Position numbers and translations under genes: made by a program. Below are positions 9,101-41,337 of a DNA stretch of 64,000 nucleotides, in pieces. This stretch comes from Klebsormidium nitens (lineage: Eukaryota; Plantae; Klebsormidiophyceae): positions 1 through 64,000 of the forward strand of contig DF237353.1 in the NCBI GenBank assembly GCA_000708835.1, read 5' to 3'. The notes under the pieces were generated by a model that was not told the DNA's origin, did no database searches, and saw only the letters and a list, made by a program, of their open reading frames with translations. Numbering within the stretch: position 1 is the stretch's first letter; the number at the start of each line of letters is the position of its first letter.

Positions 9101-10347
9101 ACTCGAGCCAACACATCGACTATGCTACAATTCATCTGTAAGTCGGACGTAAATAGCTTTCAAGATTCCAGACAAATTCCTTACTTCTACGATTCCGCTT
9201 GCCCTCAGCGTACCACTATATTGAGGAGATTGTGTCGAATACACCCGAATGGATCAAGTCTTGAAGCTCCCTCAAGGACCGATTTCTTCGTGGCCATGAT
9301 AATTTTTGTTGAGAACGATAAAGGAGAGCAGAAGCTCAGAGACTACCGCAGCTCTTCAGAATCATCGAAACGGACTCTTTTCATTGCCACTTGCTTGCAG
9401 TTGGGTTGAGAATTGGGAGATCTACAAACCGTACAACGGGAGCGACTCTAACCTTGAAAGTGGTAAGCTCCCGCGTTTCTTTTTCTTTTTTCAAGTGAGA
9501 TTGATTTGCTTGGGGTTTCGCCAACAGCGTTGATGACGTAGGGGCTGATGGTCTCGTGTGAGCTTGTACTCCAAGCGCTCCGCCGACGCGAGCATCAGAT
9601 GTTAAGCTGTACTCTTTTTTCTATGATCCTACAGCCATCAACTTCGCAAGGAGATTCTTGAAAGCACACAACGAGTTCGCTGCCAGCTTTGGCAAGCCGC
9701 TCGTCCTGGAAGAATACGGGTTGGCGCGCGACAGTTTCCCGATCAACATGAATCGCTACGATCCGAAAAGCCCAGTCACACACAGAGACAAGTACTTCCG
9801 TGCAGTTCTAGACCAGGTAAGCCGACTCTGTTGGACTAACTCCTTTCCGCGTCACAGCTACGTCAGTTGCACAGCTCATGTATCTCGTAGAGCTGAAGCT
9901 TCCGAAGTGGCACGCGTCTTCCTAAAATAGTTTGACCTCGCCTTTCTCGCCCACCTTTTACTTGATTTCAGTTTTCGATTACTCGAGAAGGATCCTCAGA
10001 AACGGCTCCTTTTGAGAAAGTTTGCTCTTTTTCGGAACGTGCTCGATTTGAGAGCTATCCAGTTATCAGTAAAGCGCTTGGCGGACCTTTCCTAGTGCTC
10101 CGGGGGTGCTACCAATCAGCATATGGTCCCCGTCCGACAGGTGTCCGCGCTTTCTAGAGAGGGTTACATGGCTGGGCAAATGTTTTGGGCGTGGGCTGGC
10201 GAGGGGCGTCCGCAGTGCAAGATGCCGGTGGGCGACCCGCCACACGAGAACCCCGGCTGGTATTCCGTGTACGACATCGACGAGAGCACCATGGCACTCT
10301 TCGCGTCATTCAATAAGCAGCTGCAAACAGATGGTCGAAAGTGTTAG
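6158..10347 (+). pseudogene. GH5 (subfamily 7-like) beta-mannanase/mannosidase; apparently disrupted (pseudogene or assembly error)
   Basis: Exons include 6158-6362, 6817-6908 (GTNMWFAAQLG), 7219-7283, 7535-7633 (KGLDFFLDALRKRNM), 7832-7980, ~8193-8247 (RFYNDTS), 8442-8547 (TRRNTINGIIY / WEICNEP), then WIEATASFVKDIDSRHMLTTGSEG, IDYATIHLWVENW, KPLVLEEYG, and 10141-10347 (GDPPHENPGWYSVYD). There is a frameshift at ~8503 just before the catalytic NEP, and AA instead of AG at the expected acceptor 8191-8192. Family call is confident; pseudogene status less so. Confidence 0.75.
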
Positions 10348-11403
10348 GGAAGCGGCCAGCTTGGTCTAATCGGTTCACCTTGATGAATCTTATAAACGAG
10401 TGCAGCTAAGGGTGGGCCTATAAGAAGACTGACCCAGAAAATGATGCTCAGTATTCCCGACATTTGCAGACCGTCCATGAAACATCGATGGACTTGACCC
10501 TTTCCGAACGTTGTGCCAGTGTCTCAGTGCAAATATCTGTCGGCAGCTTAATCGAAAAGCGCCTTAAGCCGAATCGCGCCGGACGTACGCCTAGCTTATG
10601 TGCATAGCTTTTGCATATGCGCGCGCATCAGCGAATCATTTACATGTATATTATGCACGTAGTACATGTTTAGCTGCATATTCGGAAGACTCCATATATT
10701 TGCAGGTATTTCTCATGGCCATCTAGACGCCGAATCGAACATGATTGCCGCCTCGAACCGCGACTCACATGACATACTGATCGGTCACAAACGATCGATC
10801 ATTGGGAAACTGGTTTCCCAATGACTTAAGTTTGTGGTTGCTTCTGATCGACATGCCCAAAAAAAACTTGTTAAACCACGGCCCGGGCGCGGGGCCCGAA
10901 TGCCAGTCATGCAACGGGTCAGATATGTCTGTACTCGAGCTTCTCAATCATGCGCTGGTTAACTTATCTGGATCGATCATGCAGGCTCGTATATGCAGAG
11001 CCTGTTGGCATGCTGAGCGTACATGCATTGACACAATTAATGTAGACCGACGGTCTCCAGCTGCAAGCATATGCACGTTGGCCCATGGTCTTTCTGAATG
11101 CAAATCAACGCTTGCAGTCATGCGGGGATCAGTAAGAGAATAATCCTGCATGCTTCTAGCGGTGCTGAGTTAACTCACAAGTAGATTCCATGGTGTAACG
11201 GGTTTCAACGTCGATCACCCAGGACCTAGTAACCTGGAGAGGCTATCATTGATCCGGTTGAATACAAAAGAGTCGGATGATATCGCCTGTCCGGACATGG
11301 CTTGCTCTCAAACTTCTCGTGTTGGCAACTTCTAGGTTGAGCATATCAGAACTCACCAAAGAAAAACTTTTCTGGCAAACTTCTCGTGTCTACGGGCGAA
11401 ACT

Positions 11404-13430
11404 TTAGAATACAACACCAGCTTCCCGAGCTGCATCAGCAAGAGCCTTAATCCGTCCATGAAACACGAAGCCGCCCCTGTCGTACTTAACAGCGTTGATA
11501 CCTTTTGCAAGGAGCTGCTCAGCAATGTCTTTGCCCACGGCCGCTGCGTGTTCCTGCAGAGTACAACAAGAGATATGTTGGCTGGCTGCCTGATTCCTTC
11601 TTTCAAGCGTGTCCTGTCGATTCTCAGTGGCCCGACCAAATTCGGCCTTGCTTTTACAGAAAGGTGCGCTCACCAACATAATACTGCCTAGCATAATTGC
11701 ATGAGCCATGTCAAGTTGAAGCAACCAACACGGGGGGGGAGAAAAACGTGAGGAATTACGTTGGGACTGAGAGATGAATGTCCTCCCTTGCGATATCAGC
11801 TTTATACATCAACACAGCAGCAGAGCGACAACCTAGACTAGATTCCGAATTTGAAATGCGTGACCTGATCTGCCGCCGGTGTGCAGTCACACCCACACAT
11901 GATGTAAGCGGCACCCCCAGCAGAGACCAAGTAGACACTTACGCAGGTCGCGCCGGCAGTCTTCTCGAGGGTCTCCCTAAGGCCCTTCTTCACTGTGGAA
12001 GATGCTGCAATGGTGCACTGGTTCTCGTCATCGATCACTTGGACATAGATGTGCGCGTTTGACCTGTAGACAGCCATCCGGGGGCGATCCGATGTACCGG
12101 AAATCTGCAAAGTAAGGTGCAATTTGAACATCCACGCATCTACCAATTCCTTTGCCTACTTCTACGCAAAAACCACCTGCGGGCAACCAGGGCCCGCCTG
12201 GACATTAACCTTTCAGAGTCGGCATGCCTTCACATCAGGTTGTGATTGTTCGAACAGAGACACCAGAAGAGGGGTGATAAGACATACAGACTCTTGTGCA
12301 GCTGAAAGGAGGTCTTCAGGTCAAATTTCTGTTTTGCTCTCTCCGTCACGAAAGCGTGACTCAAGCAGTAACTTTTCATCATTAGACCTCCAAACTGCAC
12401 TTTTCGTAAGCAAAGTATCAAAACGACACTGGCGAAGGAAAGACGGAGCAAAACCTTGACAAGAAAAGCAAAGAATGTATCAATCAACAAGCGAAAGTGG
12501 CGCTCAGGTCACAACGCATGGCTTTCCAAAACACTCGGAGCCTTCTGAGCAGGGTACAGCGGACGAACCAACACATTAACTAGCCAACAGGCTTTGGCCC
12601 GAACTTGCTTTTGCCGGTGGTTTGCCATGAAACAAGGCGTGATCACCAGCAATGGTTGCAGAAAGCATCAAGGACCAGTCCTGCTGGAGAGCCTTACTTT
12701 CTTTCTAATGCGCCGGTGCCTCTTCAATCGCAGTTCCTTCCGGTTGATCAGCTTCGCTTCTACCAACAACCCTATTTGCAGCGGAGCCACTGCAATGATG
12801 CAGAAGAAACGTGTTCAGTGAACATGTTCAGTGCCTTGACAACTCAAACCTTCTCAAATCATCAAGATTTAAAACAGAATCATCGCCCCCTCTGTAACCC
12901 AAGTTAAATGGAACAGCGACGTGCACCCAGCAAGCTCCTACTTGCTACTGATATCTGTACTAGGACAGTCTCGGTGTCGGCTGATGTGCCAGCATTCAGA
13001 GTCCACCTTCTGCTATCTTGCTCAAGCTTGTTCTTTGTAGTCGGAATGCAGGTTAATTACAATATTACCGGCGCCCTGGTTTGTTGCTTGGCAAGCGACA
13101 TGCCAAAGATGCACTAATCTCCGCGCTTTGCCTCAGTAAGTGCAGAGGGTCTTTCCTGAGCACAGTGACCATTACCAAGCCCGCTCGTTAGGAGTGCACA
13201 CAGGGTAGCAATGCAGCTTGGCATGTGACCAGCACCTAGAGGTCAACTGTCTCACCCTTCGCCGCTGTACTTCTCAACGCAGGCACACTCTGCTCCATCT
13301 TTTCACTCAATGTGAGCCCCGAAAAGCTGCGGAAGACCGCATCCCTGCTAGAAGTGGACGCTGACGGAATGGCAGGTGTCCTGATGGCAGCGCCGAGGCA
13401 GGAACCCTTTGCCAAAGCAACGGCTGCCAT
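11404..13430 (-). CDS. RPL18: Plastid 50S ribosomal protein L18 with N-terminal transit peptide, 4 exons
   Basis: Exons ~13430-13257 (Ser/Ala-rich transit peptide [19 protein letters not shown]...), ~12772-12699 ([21 protein letters not shown]), 12104-11943 ([26 protein letters not shown]), 11554-11404 ([22 protein letters not shown]). These are bacterial-type uL18 signatures. Confidence 0.95.
12308..12391 (-). ncRNA. Candidate intronic C/D-box snoRNA, putative 18S rRNA 2'-O-methylation guide
   Basis: Minus strand reads GGAGGTCT-A-ATGATGA...GTCACG-CTTT-CGTGAC...CAGAAATTTGA-C-CTGA-AGACCTCC. It has a perfect 8-bp terminal stem, box C (12382-12376), box D (12319-12316) and canonical k-turn spacing. 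The 11-nt guide is complementary to UCAAAUUUCUG, recalled from conserved 18S rRNA. It lies on the same strand as the host RPL18, in intron 2. Confidence 0.8.
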
Positions 13431-29145: not shown

Positions 29146-32100
29146 ATGCCAGGCCCAATGGAGTCCCTGGACGGTGCGCCCACGTCGGACAGGCATGTCA
29201 ATGCAAATCACGGCGCTGCAGTGGGACAAAATGGCGCCCATTGGGGTGAGATCATAACACCAGCAGCAAGCATGGAAACGGGAACAGGAAGAGGGTTCAA
29301 TGAAAGCACAGGAATGGGGACGGTGGCTTCAAAGTTGGAACCAATAGAGCTGGAAACGGAAACAGACGCCGATTCCGAAACTTATCACTCTAGTGATGAG
29401 GCAATTGAGAGCAGCTTACAGGATGTGGTGGAGGATGTATCTCTTGATGAACGCGGAAGCGCTGGAGAAGATCATGAGAGCAAGTCGAATGGCGAAGCTG
29501 CGACCCTTGCGAAGATGGATCTGGAAGATTACAAGGTGAACCAAACTTCAATCGAGGCAGAGTTGGGGTTGAATGTTGGGCAACTGAAAAAAGTCACAGA
29601 GAGAGGGTTGGAAGCAAGCACCACATTGAAAGAAGACTTGATGGCGACAGACGTTGAATCGGAAGCCAAGCAGCTGAATGGTCCAGCAGTTGCAGCCAAT
29701 GCAGGGTTGGAAGCAGGAACAGAATCAAACGAGGGTTTCATGGAAATTGACCTGGATTTAGCATCTGAGCAGCCTGGTGATGCAAATGATGGAGGGTTGG
29801 AAGCAGGCAGCACTTTAGTGGACTCCACGATGGCCCTTGAGCAAGCTGGAGACGGGAGTCGGATTGAACAGGATCAGCTAATAGTTGCACCGGAGGTTGC
29901 TTCTGGAGCTACAGCAGGAGTAGCCCTCCAGAACGAAGAGCATCAGCCAAGACTTTCTGCTGATGACAGGTCGGGCGCTGCCACAGAATTGGTTTCTGAG
30001 CAAACAGGAGAGGAACAGCGTGCTGAATCTCGGAGACCTTCAGCAAGCGGGGCTGGTACCCATGGAATCCTGCAGAAAGCCACAGATCTGACAGAGAGGC
30101 GGGAGTCGGAGCCAGCTTTGGTGCCATCAGAACCTCCCCCTCTTGGAAGTGTTGATGAGCAGTCACAGCAGGGACCTACAGAGGAAGCTGATACTGGGCG
30201 CATCCCATTCTTTATCATCACGAACACCGGTCGGGTAAGGCCATTAAAAACCCAATATGTGGCAGAATTGGACGAGAGCTCGCACTGATGAATGCTAGCA
30301 ACGTGCAAATTGCTGCATTGAGGAAGCTACAACAAGCAGCAGTATGGGAGGATGTGAATCGATACATTATTGGCGCGTTTGTTGAAAGGTGCAACTCAGA
30401 GACTTTGAGTGGGTTTGATGTAGTTTTAGAGGAAGCAGCGAGCCTGCAATGAAAGGCCGGCTCAATGTCGCTTGGGAGTTGTACTTCCCATGGTCAGCTT
30501 GATTGTGCCACGTCAATGTTTTTGAGTGGTGCAAAACCCTTCGCAACCAGCCTATTGACGAAGTGTCCTTCCAACCTCTGCAGAAAGCCGCCTCCCCCAG
30601 GCTCTCCAACGAGACCATCGACTTCCCGGGAGCCCGAATCTCTGCCGACAAATTTGTCGGTCTGCGATATGTCAGGGAGGGGGGTGACGTTTCCCAGAGC
30701 GGTTCGGCAAGCCCCGGTGTGCGTCTTCTCGGCGCCATCCAGGACTTTCCATCCAGGACTGCAGTGGCAGCGGGGAAGACTGTGACAAGCCTGCTGTCAG
30801 TTCTGCCATCTCCAAGAAGGAGCTCAAGCGGAGGGGAGAAAGCTGTGGCGGATCCAACAGAGGCAGGCCGAGGGGGCCAGGAAAAAGAGACATCCACACC
30901 CCGTGACGGCAGTGCGTCTGCGGCAGAGGTAAGCTTGTTGAGCCTGATTTTCAGTCTCGCCGGATCATCCGATTCACCATCACCTCGGCCATTGAGAGTG
31001 CAGTTGAAAATCGCTTGACACCCCTCAGCTTCGACGGTCCATTGAGGTGACACTTGATCTGTTTCAAAATTTGCAATCTGGTAGTAATGAACCAGTGGTT
31101 TGCAAGTTTAAGCTAAGCAATGGACGAAGCTGTTCTGTCTTTGCGGGACGACCTAGGTGGACCACCAAGTGGTGACCAGGAGGCACTTGGTCGCCAGGCA
31201 CCGACGGGCCCCTGTATGCCCTCCCTAACATCGATTTGAGGTGTCAAAATCTGCTCCCACCTTGCGTGCATCCCCTGTCCTGTCCAGAGATCTTTCAGGC
31301 GTTTTAGAAGTGCTCTTAGCAGACGGCGTTCGTTTCGCAGGGGCCAGCCAGCACCAGTGGCTCTGGCAGCAGGCGCCAGTCCGTCGACAGCCCCGAGTTG
31401 CACGTGTGGGAGATTATCTGGAAGGACCACAGCAAGCACACGCAGGACCGGCCTGGCGGAACCCTGCAGCAGGTCCAGTTCGAGACGACGAAGGCAGGGT
31501 GAGCGATTGTTGGTTCAATCAGCGGTGTCTGTCGACTGAGCTTTTGTGCGTCCGTCAGGCACCATTCAGCGGTAGGTACGGTGTTTTGGAACACAGCGTT
31601 GCGCTCTGGAACCTCGCTGCCGCGACAGCCAATTAATCTGAGCTGGACCGACGTTTGTGGTTGCCCCTGCGGTAACAATCGCTCGATGGGTTTGCAGTTT
31701 TAGAACAGGACAAACGCTCAGGCGACAAGAGGTGCTCTGGAGACCCAACGAAAGAGTTCTTCAGGACCCCACTTTCAGTCCAGTCGGATTTCTGTGCCCT
31801 AGCACAGAAATTGTGCTTTAAGACCGGCTCTGCAGACCACACTTCCACGCAGCTCTGGCAGCCACTTGTTTCAGAACCAGGGTGGAAAATTTCACCAGCA
31901 GCCCCTCACTCAGAAGCTTCTGCGTAACACCTTCGTCTCCGACAATTCCGCTTCCTGTATACGAGTCCAATCCTGCTCTTAGTCCTCGCAGCTCCTCAGG
32001 ATTCTATGCTTTCGATGGGGTGCAGGACTTGCGCATCCTTCTCGCAAACATGGTGCACCCTTCTCAAAGTTCGAGGAGCGTTTGCCTCTGGACGATTGTC

Positions 32101-38715: not shown

Positions 38716-41337
38716 TATCGATCGGCAACCGTCCGTTAAGATGCTGCTTTCATCGACGGTCGAGATGCGGCGGCACTAGTCAGAGTCCGTAAGTCGTGTC
38801 GGAGTGTGAGGAGTGACTGGAGGGCGCACCGGATACGAACGGTAGCCAGTGAAGCTTTCGCTCAGGCTGAAGGGTTTAAGGACTGCTGGCTTTCATCCGT
38901 CAGATTGTCAACACATCATTGGGGCTTGGCGTCTTACCAGTTAGTACGGTGGGTTGAGTCAGGTTGAGAAGAAGTTAAAGGCGCGCACGCACCTTAGCAC
39001 CTGGATATTTCGATGTCATGATCATCAGCACGTCTTTTGCCGACAGTGGCAAGGAGGAAACCGTACCCTGTCTCAATCAGAACGGCCGTTTGAAAATTAA
39101 GAGAACCAGAAAAGGCGAGCTAGCAGTCGACTGCTCGTACTGAATGAGGCGTGACCCACTTCTTATCGAATTCACAGAGTCTAGGGACAAACGCCTCTAG
39201 CTGTGCAAACTACGTCGCTTTTTCTGTGCACCTGCCAGTGTTTCATGGAGCAGTTGATCATTTCCGATCTCAATCAGGCTTCACGATCAGATCATTTCAA
39301 ACTTCAATCTGGACGAAAAGTACGACTTGGCACTTCAACGATATTTCGAAGTAGACTCATCAAAGCTGACCTTTTTGCTTGGCGAGTCGCTGAGCCGTTT
39401 GACTCTGACTCTTGCCATCTTGATCACTTTCGTCTAGAGCCCCATCTCATGACCTTATCTCACCCAGTCCCAGAGGAACGCACGTGGGTCTTAAAACGGT
39501 GCCAGCATGACCGAGCAAGTCTCTTTGATTGCCAATCTTGTCGGTTGTCTGTCATATGCAACGAAGATTGTTTAGCACTGCCTTTCTCGCTTCAGTTATT
39601 GGCGGTGTAGAAACATCGTCGGAAGCGTCGACCGAAGCGTAATCGAAGAGCTTTTTAGTATTATAATGCAATTTATGTGGCACCACTTTTGACGTGTGTG
39701 CTTCGAGGGCTTTAGCAAATGACTTGTTACACACTTGTCAAAATGGTGAGCTGCAGGCTATGACAAACCCTCTGCCGTGGTTATAAAGTGACTCGACCGC
39801 TCGATATCATCGGATCAAGCGCTCTTGAAGCGGATATCAGGGTACGTTTGTCATGGGCTTGAATTTATACTATTCCACGAGGTCTGCATGAGTCTCGGGT
39901 CAAGTTTCCGGCAGCTTCAAAGCGCGTACGTCTTTATGAACACTGGCTGACCGGTTTTGCGCCGCAAAGAGATTCTAATGTGTACTGCAGTAGCTGAGTC
40001 CTGATGTGATGAACGTTGCTTGTCTCTAGTACGGCAAGTATCTCTTCTGGCGCGGCACATCGAACCGTCCTCTGTGCTGAGTCAGGTAAAGCAGAAGTTC
40101 CAGAGACTCAGAATGACTCGGCCCCGTTGAACCATGCGCTCTTTACCACGGCGCTGTGCGGATTGAAAAATCTGATCCGTGGGCATCTGTGAAACTGTCC
40201 ACCGTAGCGAACTTCGTCGCTGAACTTTCGCATGGCCTGTAATCATTTCGGATGCCCTTGATCCAGAAATTGCTCGGATGGATGTCTAGCTGAATGTGGA
40301 CATAAGATCCCGGCCCAGACCTCGACTAGCTCCCCTACATGCCTCCGCTTGCTACTCTGAGTCCCTGCACTTGGACCAGCAGTACTGCCGCATCGGTCAC
40401 CTACACGAGGGTGAATGAGCTACCAGTTTTTTGCATGCCAGTTTAGCATCGTTGAGTGGGTGGCGAAGTTCGTCAAAAGTCAGAACGATGTTGGGCCAAT
40501 CTGTGCAAGGATTGCTTCCGAACTGATTCTCATGCCACGAGGAAACCAGTGGTATCTACGACCAACACCTTCTAAGGCACTCCTCTAATATGATAATATG
40601 TATGAGGCGCCCCGCTTCCATCTTCAGTTCTTCAATTTCCGGCAGCAATACTACTACCTACTGTAGGCACAGTACCAGGGGACTGACCCAGAGCACACGA
40701 AGCCAGTCAATCGGAGCCGGAAAGCCCAACCTCTGAGCCTTGGAGAGACCTCCGAAGACAGAGAAGACGGTCGTTTCCCAACAGTATCCTTGGACAAAGC
40801 AGTTGTTGGTCCAAGGACTACCACGTGGCTTTCCCCCAAGTCGTTACAACATTGAACACACGCTTACTTCCCAAGGTTGACGAAAATCTTTGTGTGCGGA
40901 CTCAATCGCGGCCGTTGCCTCCGACCAGCAGTTGAACCACGATCGTCGATGCTAACAACCTGAGGGCCGACAAGATCTGCTGACGCCATGAGGGTCCAAA
41001 ATTGAGCTCTTGCAATCATGCATATGCCATGTGGCAGCTTTTCGGCGTCTCAAAAAGCTCTCTGCTCACGAATCTGGTAGGACTAGTAGTAGAAGTTGGA
41101 CTGGGCGCTGTGACTCGCGTTGCGTTGTAGTTTGATATTGTAGCTGCTGCACCAGTGCTGGTGCCAGCTCCTCTCTGCTCTTCACTCGCTCATCACTCCA
41201 GTCTCTCTCACTCTCCACTTTTGTGATAGAAGGCAAGGCCGCAGCATCGCAGGCATTCTCGTGTAACCAAGGCCTTTTCATTGTCAGCTAGCTGTGGATC
41301 GCAACCGCAAGCTTCCGTGAGAAGAAACAGACACAAG

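Follow-up and report, generated by a model that had tools for sequence, protein, structure and literature searches.

The minus strand of Klebsormidium nitens contig DF237353.1 carries, between positions 12308 and 12391, an 84-nt element with the outline of a box C/D snoRNA, lodged in an intron of a gene for ribosomal protein uL18. The question raised by this locus is whether the element is a genuine guide RNA gene and, if so, which nucleotide it would select. We analysed the 64,000-nt stretch of DNA that contains it (positions 1 to 64,000 of the contig, referred to as the window), together with orthologous genes from two relatives and with 18S rRNA sequences. The reading we favour is that of a single-copy intronic box C/D snoRNA that guides 2'-O-methylation of the middle A of the 18S segment UCAAAUUUCUG, and we put the probability of this full chain at about 0.75. 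Taken alone, the claim that the element is a selected C/D snoRNA gene is highly probable.

The minus-strand sequence from 12391 to 12308, as quoted in the original prediction, proved to be exact. Its parts are as follows, in the order in which they would be read in the RNA.

12308..12391, minus strand: whole predicted box C/D snoRNA, 84 nt (from sequence, chance statistics and conservation)
12384..12391, minus strand: 5' arm of the terminal stem, GGAGGUCU, pairing with 12308-12315; the inner seven pairs are invariant in three species
12376..12382, minus strand: box C, AUGAUGA, invariant in three species
12365..12375, minus strand: upstream (D') antisense region, AAAGUUACUGC, 11 nt, without a convincing target
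12361..12364, minus strand: box D'-like UUGA, matching CUGA at three of four positions, invariant in three species
12345..12360, minus strand: internal hairpin of 6 bp with a 4-nt loop, lying between D' and C'
12332..12344, minus strand: degenerate C'-like region and spacer, GGAGAGAGCAAAA, 13 nt, purine-rich
12321..12331, minus strand: D guide, CAGAAAUUUGA, 11 nt, complementary to 18S UCAAAUUUCUG
12316..12319, minus strand: box D, CUGA, invariant in three species
12308..12315, minus strand: 3' arm of the terminal stem, AGACCUCC, pairing perfectly with GGAGGUCU

The element thus has an RUGAUGA box C near its 5' end, a CUGA box D near its 3' end and a closing stem. As originally described, this stem is a perfect 8-bp helix (12391-12384 with 12315-12308) with an offset of one nucleotide, a single unpaired A separating the 5' arm from box C, and one base (C) separates the guide from box D. 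Registers of the stem that were slid against each other were only 29-49% paired, in contrast to the perfect pairing of the observed one. The span of 67 nt from box C to box D was correct when counted inclusively, and so was the 6-bp hairpin (12360-12345) preceded by a D'-like UUGA (12364-12361). The C' region reads GGAGAG and is degenerate, a clean UGAUGA being absent from the element. The fold z-score of the element RNA was -3.2, and the terminal stem was retained in the fold.

With regard to the surroundings, the element had been placed in an intron of a ribosomal protein L18 gene, and this placement was borne out by spliced contigs from four studies and by Pfam family PF00861, which gave E = 6e-15 for exon 3 and E = 9e-17 for exon 4 when the exons were searched separately. 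The gene is built as follows.

11404..13430, minus strand: host coding sequence, bacterial-type uL18 with an N-terminal extension (from Pfam and the joints of spliced contigs)
13430-13256, 12789-12698, 12104-11943 and 11553-11404 (stop included), minus strand: the host exons
12790-13255, minus strand: intron 1, with an exact GT..AG joint
12105-12697, minus strand: intron 2, 593 nt, with an exact joint 12104/12698, GT..AG
about 11553-11941, minus strand: intron 3, with an exact GT..AG joint

All three introns were seen as joints in spliced contigs of four public runs, and depth was 30 to 850 in exons as compared with 1 to 6 in introns. The exact joints and the difference in depth indicate that the host gene is expressed and efficiently spliced; in its intron 2, 306 nt separate the element from the 5' splice site and 203 nt from the 3' splice site. 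Over the element itself there was no coverage peak; the contigs are assembled and apparently derive from poly(A) libraries, which are blind to an 84-nt RNA. The low-depth intron contigs of one run (X9) stop at 12299 and resume at 12387, leaving a gap that nearly matches the snoRNA body, and one contig of another run (X11), 12273-12470, crosses the element; depth was too low and the contigs too coarse for these patterns to be interpreted, and holes of this kind prove nothing. Within intron 3 an insignificant match resembling a mir-9209 hairpin was also seen (11809-11885, minus strand; 16.3 bits, E = 9.8), which blastn did not find conserved in the more distant of the two relatives described below (L002).

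The N-terminal extension of the host protein is rich in alanine, serine and threonine and looks like an organellar targeting peptide, as judged from its composition. The host is probably a nuclear gene for an organellar uL18, that of the plastid, and we take the protein to be similar to plant plastid PRPL18. The original prediction had suggested that a cytosolic rRNA guide hosted by such a gene would couple two ribosome systems. Nothing in the analysis supports this idea. SnoRNAs commonly reside in introns of ribosomal and translation genes, and translation-related hosts are the rule for them.

To follow the element in other species, relatives were found by a word search with an open reading frame spanning exon 3. 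Two were obtained, both on long genomic contigs: L001, from a Logan assembly, and L002, from a JGI metagenome. When the exon-4 peptide was used to look for more distant relatives, the matches were confined to bacterial ribosomal-protein operons in which the L18 call is split. Both relatives have the same four-exon uL18 gene and carry the element in the orthologous intron (L001:3604-3686 and L002:2572-2653). A GH5 mannosidase-like gene adjoins uL18 in the window (about 9650-10350, plus strand) as well as in L001 (5867-6034), indicating that local synteny is conserved. Blastn aligned the exons and one non-coding island in both relatives; the island is the element, and the remainder of intron 2 could not be aligned. 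The degree of conservation was as follows.

L001: third-codon identity over the four exons 0.82; element 80/84 identical; P = 4e-4 under that neutral rate
L002: third-codon identity over the four exons 0.57; element 75/84 identical; P = 1e-10 under that neutral rate

The changes are unevenly placed. Both boxes, the UUGA, the seven inner pairs of the stem and the 12 nt that precede box D are unchanged across the three species. The base between the terminal stem and box C varies between A and G. The hairpin at 12345..12360 is 100% paired in all three with a variable loop, and its closing pair has changed on both sides from G-C to A-U in L002, which is one compensatory change. Two substitutions fall in the C'-like spacer in L001, and in L002 the fifth base before the UUGA has changed from A to U. 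With only three sequences the covariation statistics do not by themselves reach significance; even so, the substitutions are distributed as one would expect in a functional guide RNA. Conservation in related algae had been set beforehand as a check on the prediction, and the outcome, with boxes and stem kept in a flanking intron that cannot be aligned, speaks for it. By this comparison purifying selection is shown on the boxes, the stem and the D guide, and the element is almost certainly a genuine, conserved box C/D snoRNA.

To determine what the RNA would guide, the 18 nt before box D were scanned against two complete rDNA units annotated by Rfam. One strong match was obtained, in which guide positions 2-12 form 11 contiguous Watson-Crick pairs with 18S UCAAAUUUCUG; among shuffled guides, 12 of 3000 reached 11 pairs (0.4%; P about 0.004). 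The claim of an 11-nt guide complementary to a conserved 18S segment was thereby supported for green-lineage 18S, also with regard to the conservation of the target. When metagenome contigs were scanned with a green-lineage 18S anchor located 49 nt downstream of the target, the target itself being excluded from the anchor, TCAAATTTCTG was present in 75 of the 78 green-lineage 18S loci with enough upstream sequence, and in 74 of these 75 the offset was identical and the flanks were invariant. Of the three other loci, two showed a one-base difference and the third had unrelated upstream sequence. The target segment also occurs in Arabidopsis 18S and in a yeast 18S probe. A search for 18S in viral contigs gave no match. 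The metagenomic green-algal rDNA units L005, L044 and L049 contained multiple group I introns in 18S and 25S, and L044 showed a tRNA-like match within the LSU region.

Guide position 5 stands opposite the middle A of UCAAAUUUCUG, so that the fifth-nucleotide rule selects this A as the predicted site of 2'-O-methylation, the same nucleotide as in the original prediction. The A, at about position 302 of the Rfam SSU model, belongs to a long-range helix of the 5' domain; it is on the 3' strand, and the strand it faces occupies about 106-125 in the same model. We take it to be yeast A300, as counted along the yeast sequence and cross-checked against the known yeast sites A100, C414, A420, A436, A541 and U578, in agreement with the earlier estimate of roughly nt 300; the Arabidopsis equivalent is then about A304, and the human one about A348.

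Modification at this position appears to be without precedent, since the nucleotide is unmethylated in Arabidopsis, and yeast and human 18S are not known to carry an Nm at the equivalent position. The Arabidopsis RiboMeth-seq map gives 35 Nm for 18S with none between G246 and G392, and the homologous position (about A304) is unmethylated (PMC8053127, Table 1); the remark that no assigned site was known here thus holds for this map. A guide for A300/about A304 is likewise missing from the Nm map and the snoRNA list in the accessible parts of that source. The string AGAAAUUUGA was absent from the Arabidopsis snoRNAs in the accessible part of the supplement of PMC8053127, from the accessible Ostreococcus supplements and from the first 200 of the 621 supplementary files of a plant snoRNA family survey. 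In the literature, covered as partial texts and not as snoRNA databases, the guide string matched only unrelated primers and no snoRNA. No literature on Klebsormidium snoRNAs was found, and there is no published snoRNA catalogue for this alga. Taken together with the absence of a known site in yeast and human, these negative results from partial texts make the guide specificity appear undescribed. For a streptophyte alga, the locus would then provide a guide RNA that is well supported and apparently not yet described, along with a new 18S methylation site as a prediction. The guide itself is textbook-like, its interior being conserved and its rRNA match unique, and involves no new mechanism.

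The upstream antisense region behaves differently from the D guide. AAAGUUACUGC had no 8-mer complement in the accessible portion of the Arabidopsis rRNA text, and the D' region gave only weak matches to algal rDNA, of 9 pairs including 2 G.U. One of these is to GCGGUAAUU of the 18S 530 loop, in which the fifth base falls on the U of GCGG-U-AAUU. We take this U to be the conserved site known as Um578 in yeast and U582 in Arabidopsis, for which snR77, SnoR77Y and SNORD65 are the guides, so that these 9 pairs, two being G.U, would be made with the segment targeted by those snoRNAs. In comparison with them the pairing is weak, and the U at the fifth D' base of L002 creates a U-U mismatch at the GCGGUAAUU target. 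Several equally weak rRNA matches of the D' region exist. Because the pairing is weak, equal matches arise by chance and L002 carries the mismatch, we treat the D' guide as orphan or inactive and its likeness to the snR77, SnoR77Y and SNORD65 targets as a coincidence; with no convincing target, this guide may be inactive.

An orphan D' guide fits a first alternative, in which the element gives rise to a real C/D snoRNP that pairs with 18S without methylating it, acting as a chaperone of the 5'-domain helix, or that has some other RNA target and matches 18S only incidentally. The target strand is base-paired in mature 18S, the guide-18S duplex is short (11 bp) and AU-rich with 3 G-C pairs, and no Nm at the site is known from Arabidopsis (PMC8053127); these points favour it. 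Against it, the register is canonical, with guide positions 2-12 paired and a Watson-Crick pair at position 5, exactly as predicted for a methylation guide; precisely these 12 nt are invariant despite saturated synonymous sites; and the 18S match has a P of about 0.004. On these grounds we regard pairing without methylation as unlikely.

For the favoured methylation guide, RNA accumulation, snoRNP assembly and methylation are what we infer from the sequence. The snoRNA would be transcribed as part of the uL18 pre-mRNA, and its terminal stem and boxes C and D would form a kink-turn recruiting Snu13, Nop56, Nop58 and fibrillarin. Exonucleases would trim the excised intron or the pre-mRNA until the protected particle of 84 nt is left. 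Once in the nucleolus, the 11-nt guide that stops one base short of box D would pair with UCAAAUUUCUG of pre-18S rRNA, and the middle A, which faces the fifth base of the guide, would be 2'-O-methylated by fibrillarin. A more far-reaching version, in which klebsormidiophycean 18S carries a lineage-specific Am at the yeast-equivalent A300 and the host links the regulation of cytosolic and organellar ribosomes, we consider very unlikely. If it were true, an Am absent from Arabidopsis, yeast and human would sit in the long-range helix of the 5' domain, and the output of the snoRNA would depend on transcription and splicing of a gene for the plastid ribosome, that of the organellar uL18.

A second alternative would make the element a dispersed member of one of the orphan families of box C/D-like repeats, with a coincidental rRNA complementarity. 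The element is, however, single copy within the window and has no paralogue there, and in two other species it occupies the corresponding place in the intron, with an interior, guide included, that is conserved and not fast-changing. Under relaxed criteria the whole window yielded eight C/D-like candidates, and none but 12308..12391 matched rRNA over 10 bp or more. Membership in such a family is accordingly a very improbable explanation. Two of the other candidates can be described briefly. The one at 40006-40080 (plus strand) is weaker, with GTGATGA followed by CTGA 71 nt later and a 5-bp perfect stem (6 bp with G.U), and is without rRNA complementarity of at least 10 bp in two algal rDNA units; the one at 30127-30221 (minus strand) was found under the relaxed criteria, with a 6-bp stem (G.U allowed) and without an rRNA match.

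Thirdly, the element might be a conserved cis-acting structure of the intron, for example a protein-bound kink-turn, that regulates splicing or expression of uL18. Ribosomal protein genes often contain autoregulatory RNA structures, and apart from the element no non-coding part of the gene forms a conserved island. This explanation leaves unaccounted for the perfect C/D boxes and an invariant single-stranded 12-mer in the register of an 18S guide, and intron 2 was efficiently spliced in all runs. We rate it as slightly less probable again than membership in a repeat family.

The remaining alternative, a chance look-alike, can be judged from how often such an architecture arises at random. Both strands were scanned for RTGATGA followed 40-120 nt on by CTGA, with a perfect closing stem of 5 bp or more, and the scan was calibrated with 60 first-order Markov simulations of the 64-kb window. 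The expectation was 0.08 such sites per 64 kb, both strands included; a stem of 6 bp was reached in 0 of the 60 simulations, as compared with the 8 bp observed, and for an 8-bp stem the expectation falls below 0.01. A functionless look-alike, in favour of which one could cite that no Rfam family scored above threshold, is effectively refuted by this expectation and by the conservation P of 1e-10 against neutral divergence. The element at 12308..12391 is a real feature.

As for known families, a scan of the whole 64-kb window at the Rfam gathering threshold found no family and no rDNA. The Rfam search of the interval that the original prediction had proposed as a check therefore gave no family above gathering, and what it did give came from a permissive scan, in which the plant C/D snoRNA snoZ223 (RF00135) was the best match; it scored 17.8 bits, where 45 is the gathering score, with an insignificant E of 9.1. 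No other Rfam model touches the interval, and snoZ223 resembles the element in overall length and in the placement of boxes and terminal stem. Since the score lies far below gathering and the guide regions are unrelated, the element is not a snoZ223 member and this assignment was rejected.

Compared with canonical intronic C/D snoRNAs (the Arabidopsis set of PMC8053127 and vertebrate SNORDs), the element has the same boxes C and D and terminal stem. Likewise shared are an antisense stretch of 10 nt or more that stops one base short of box D and places its fifth base opposite the target, and the arrangement of one snoRNA per intron of a translation-related host; a small hairpin parts the candidate D' and C' boxes, as it does in the canonical snoRNAs. 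It differs from them in that D' and C' are degenerate and in that the host encodes an organellar and not a cytosolic ribosomal protein. The distance to the 3' splice site is typically roughly 70-80 nt in vertebrate intronic snoRNAs, whereas the element, at 203 nt, lies farther away.
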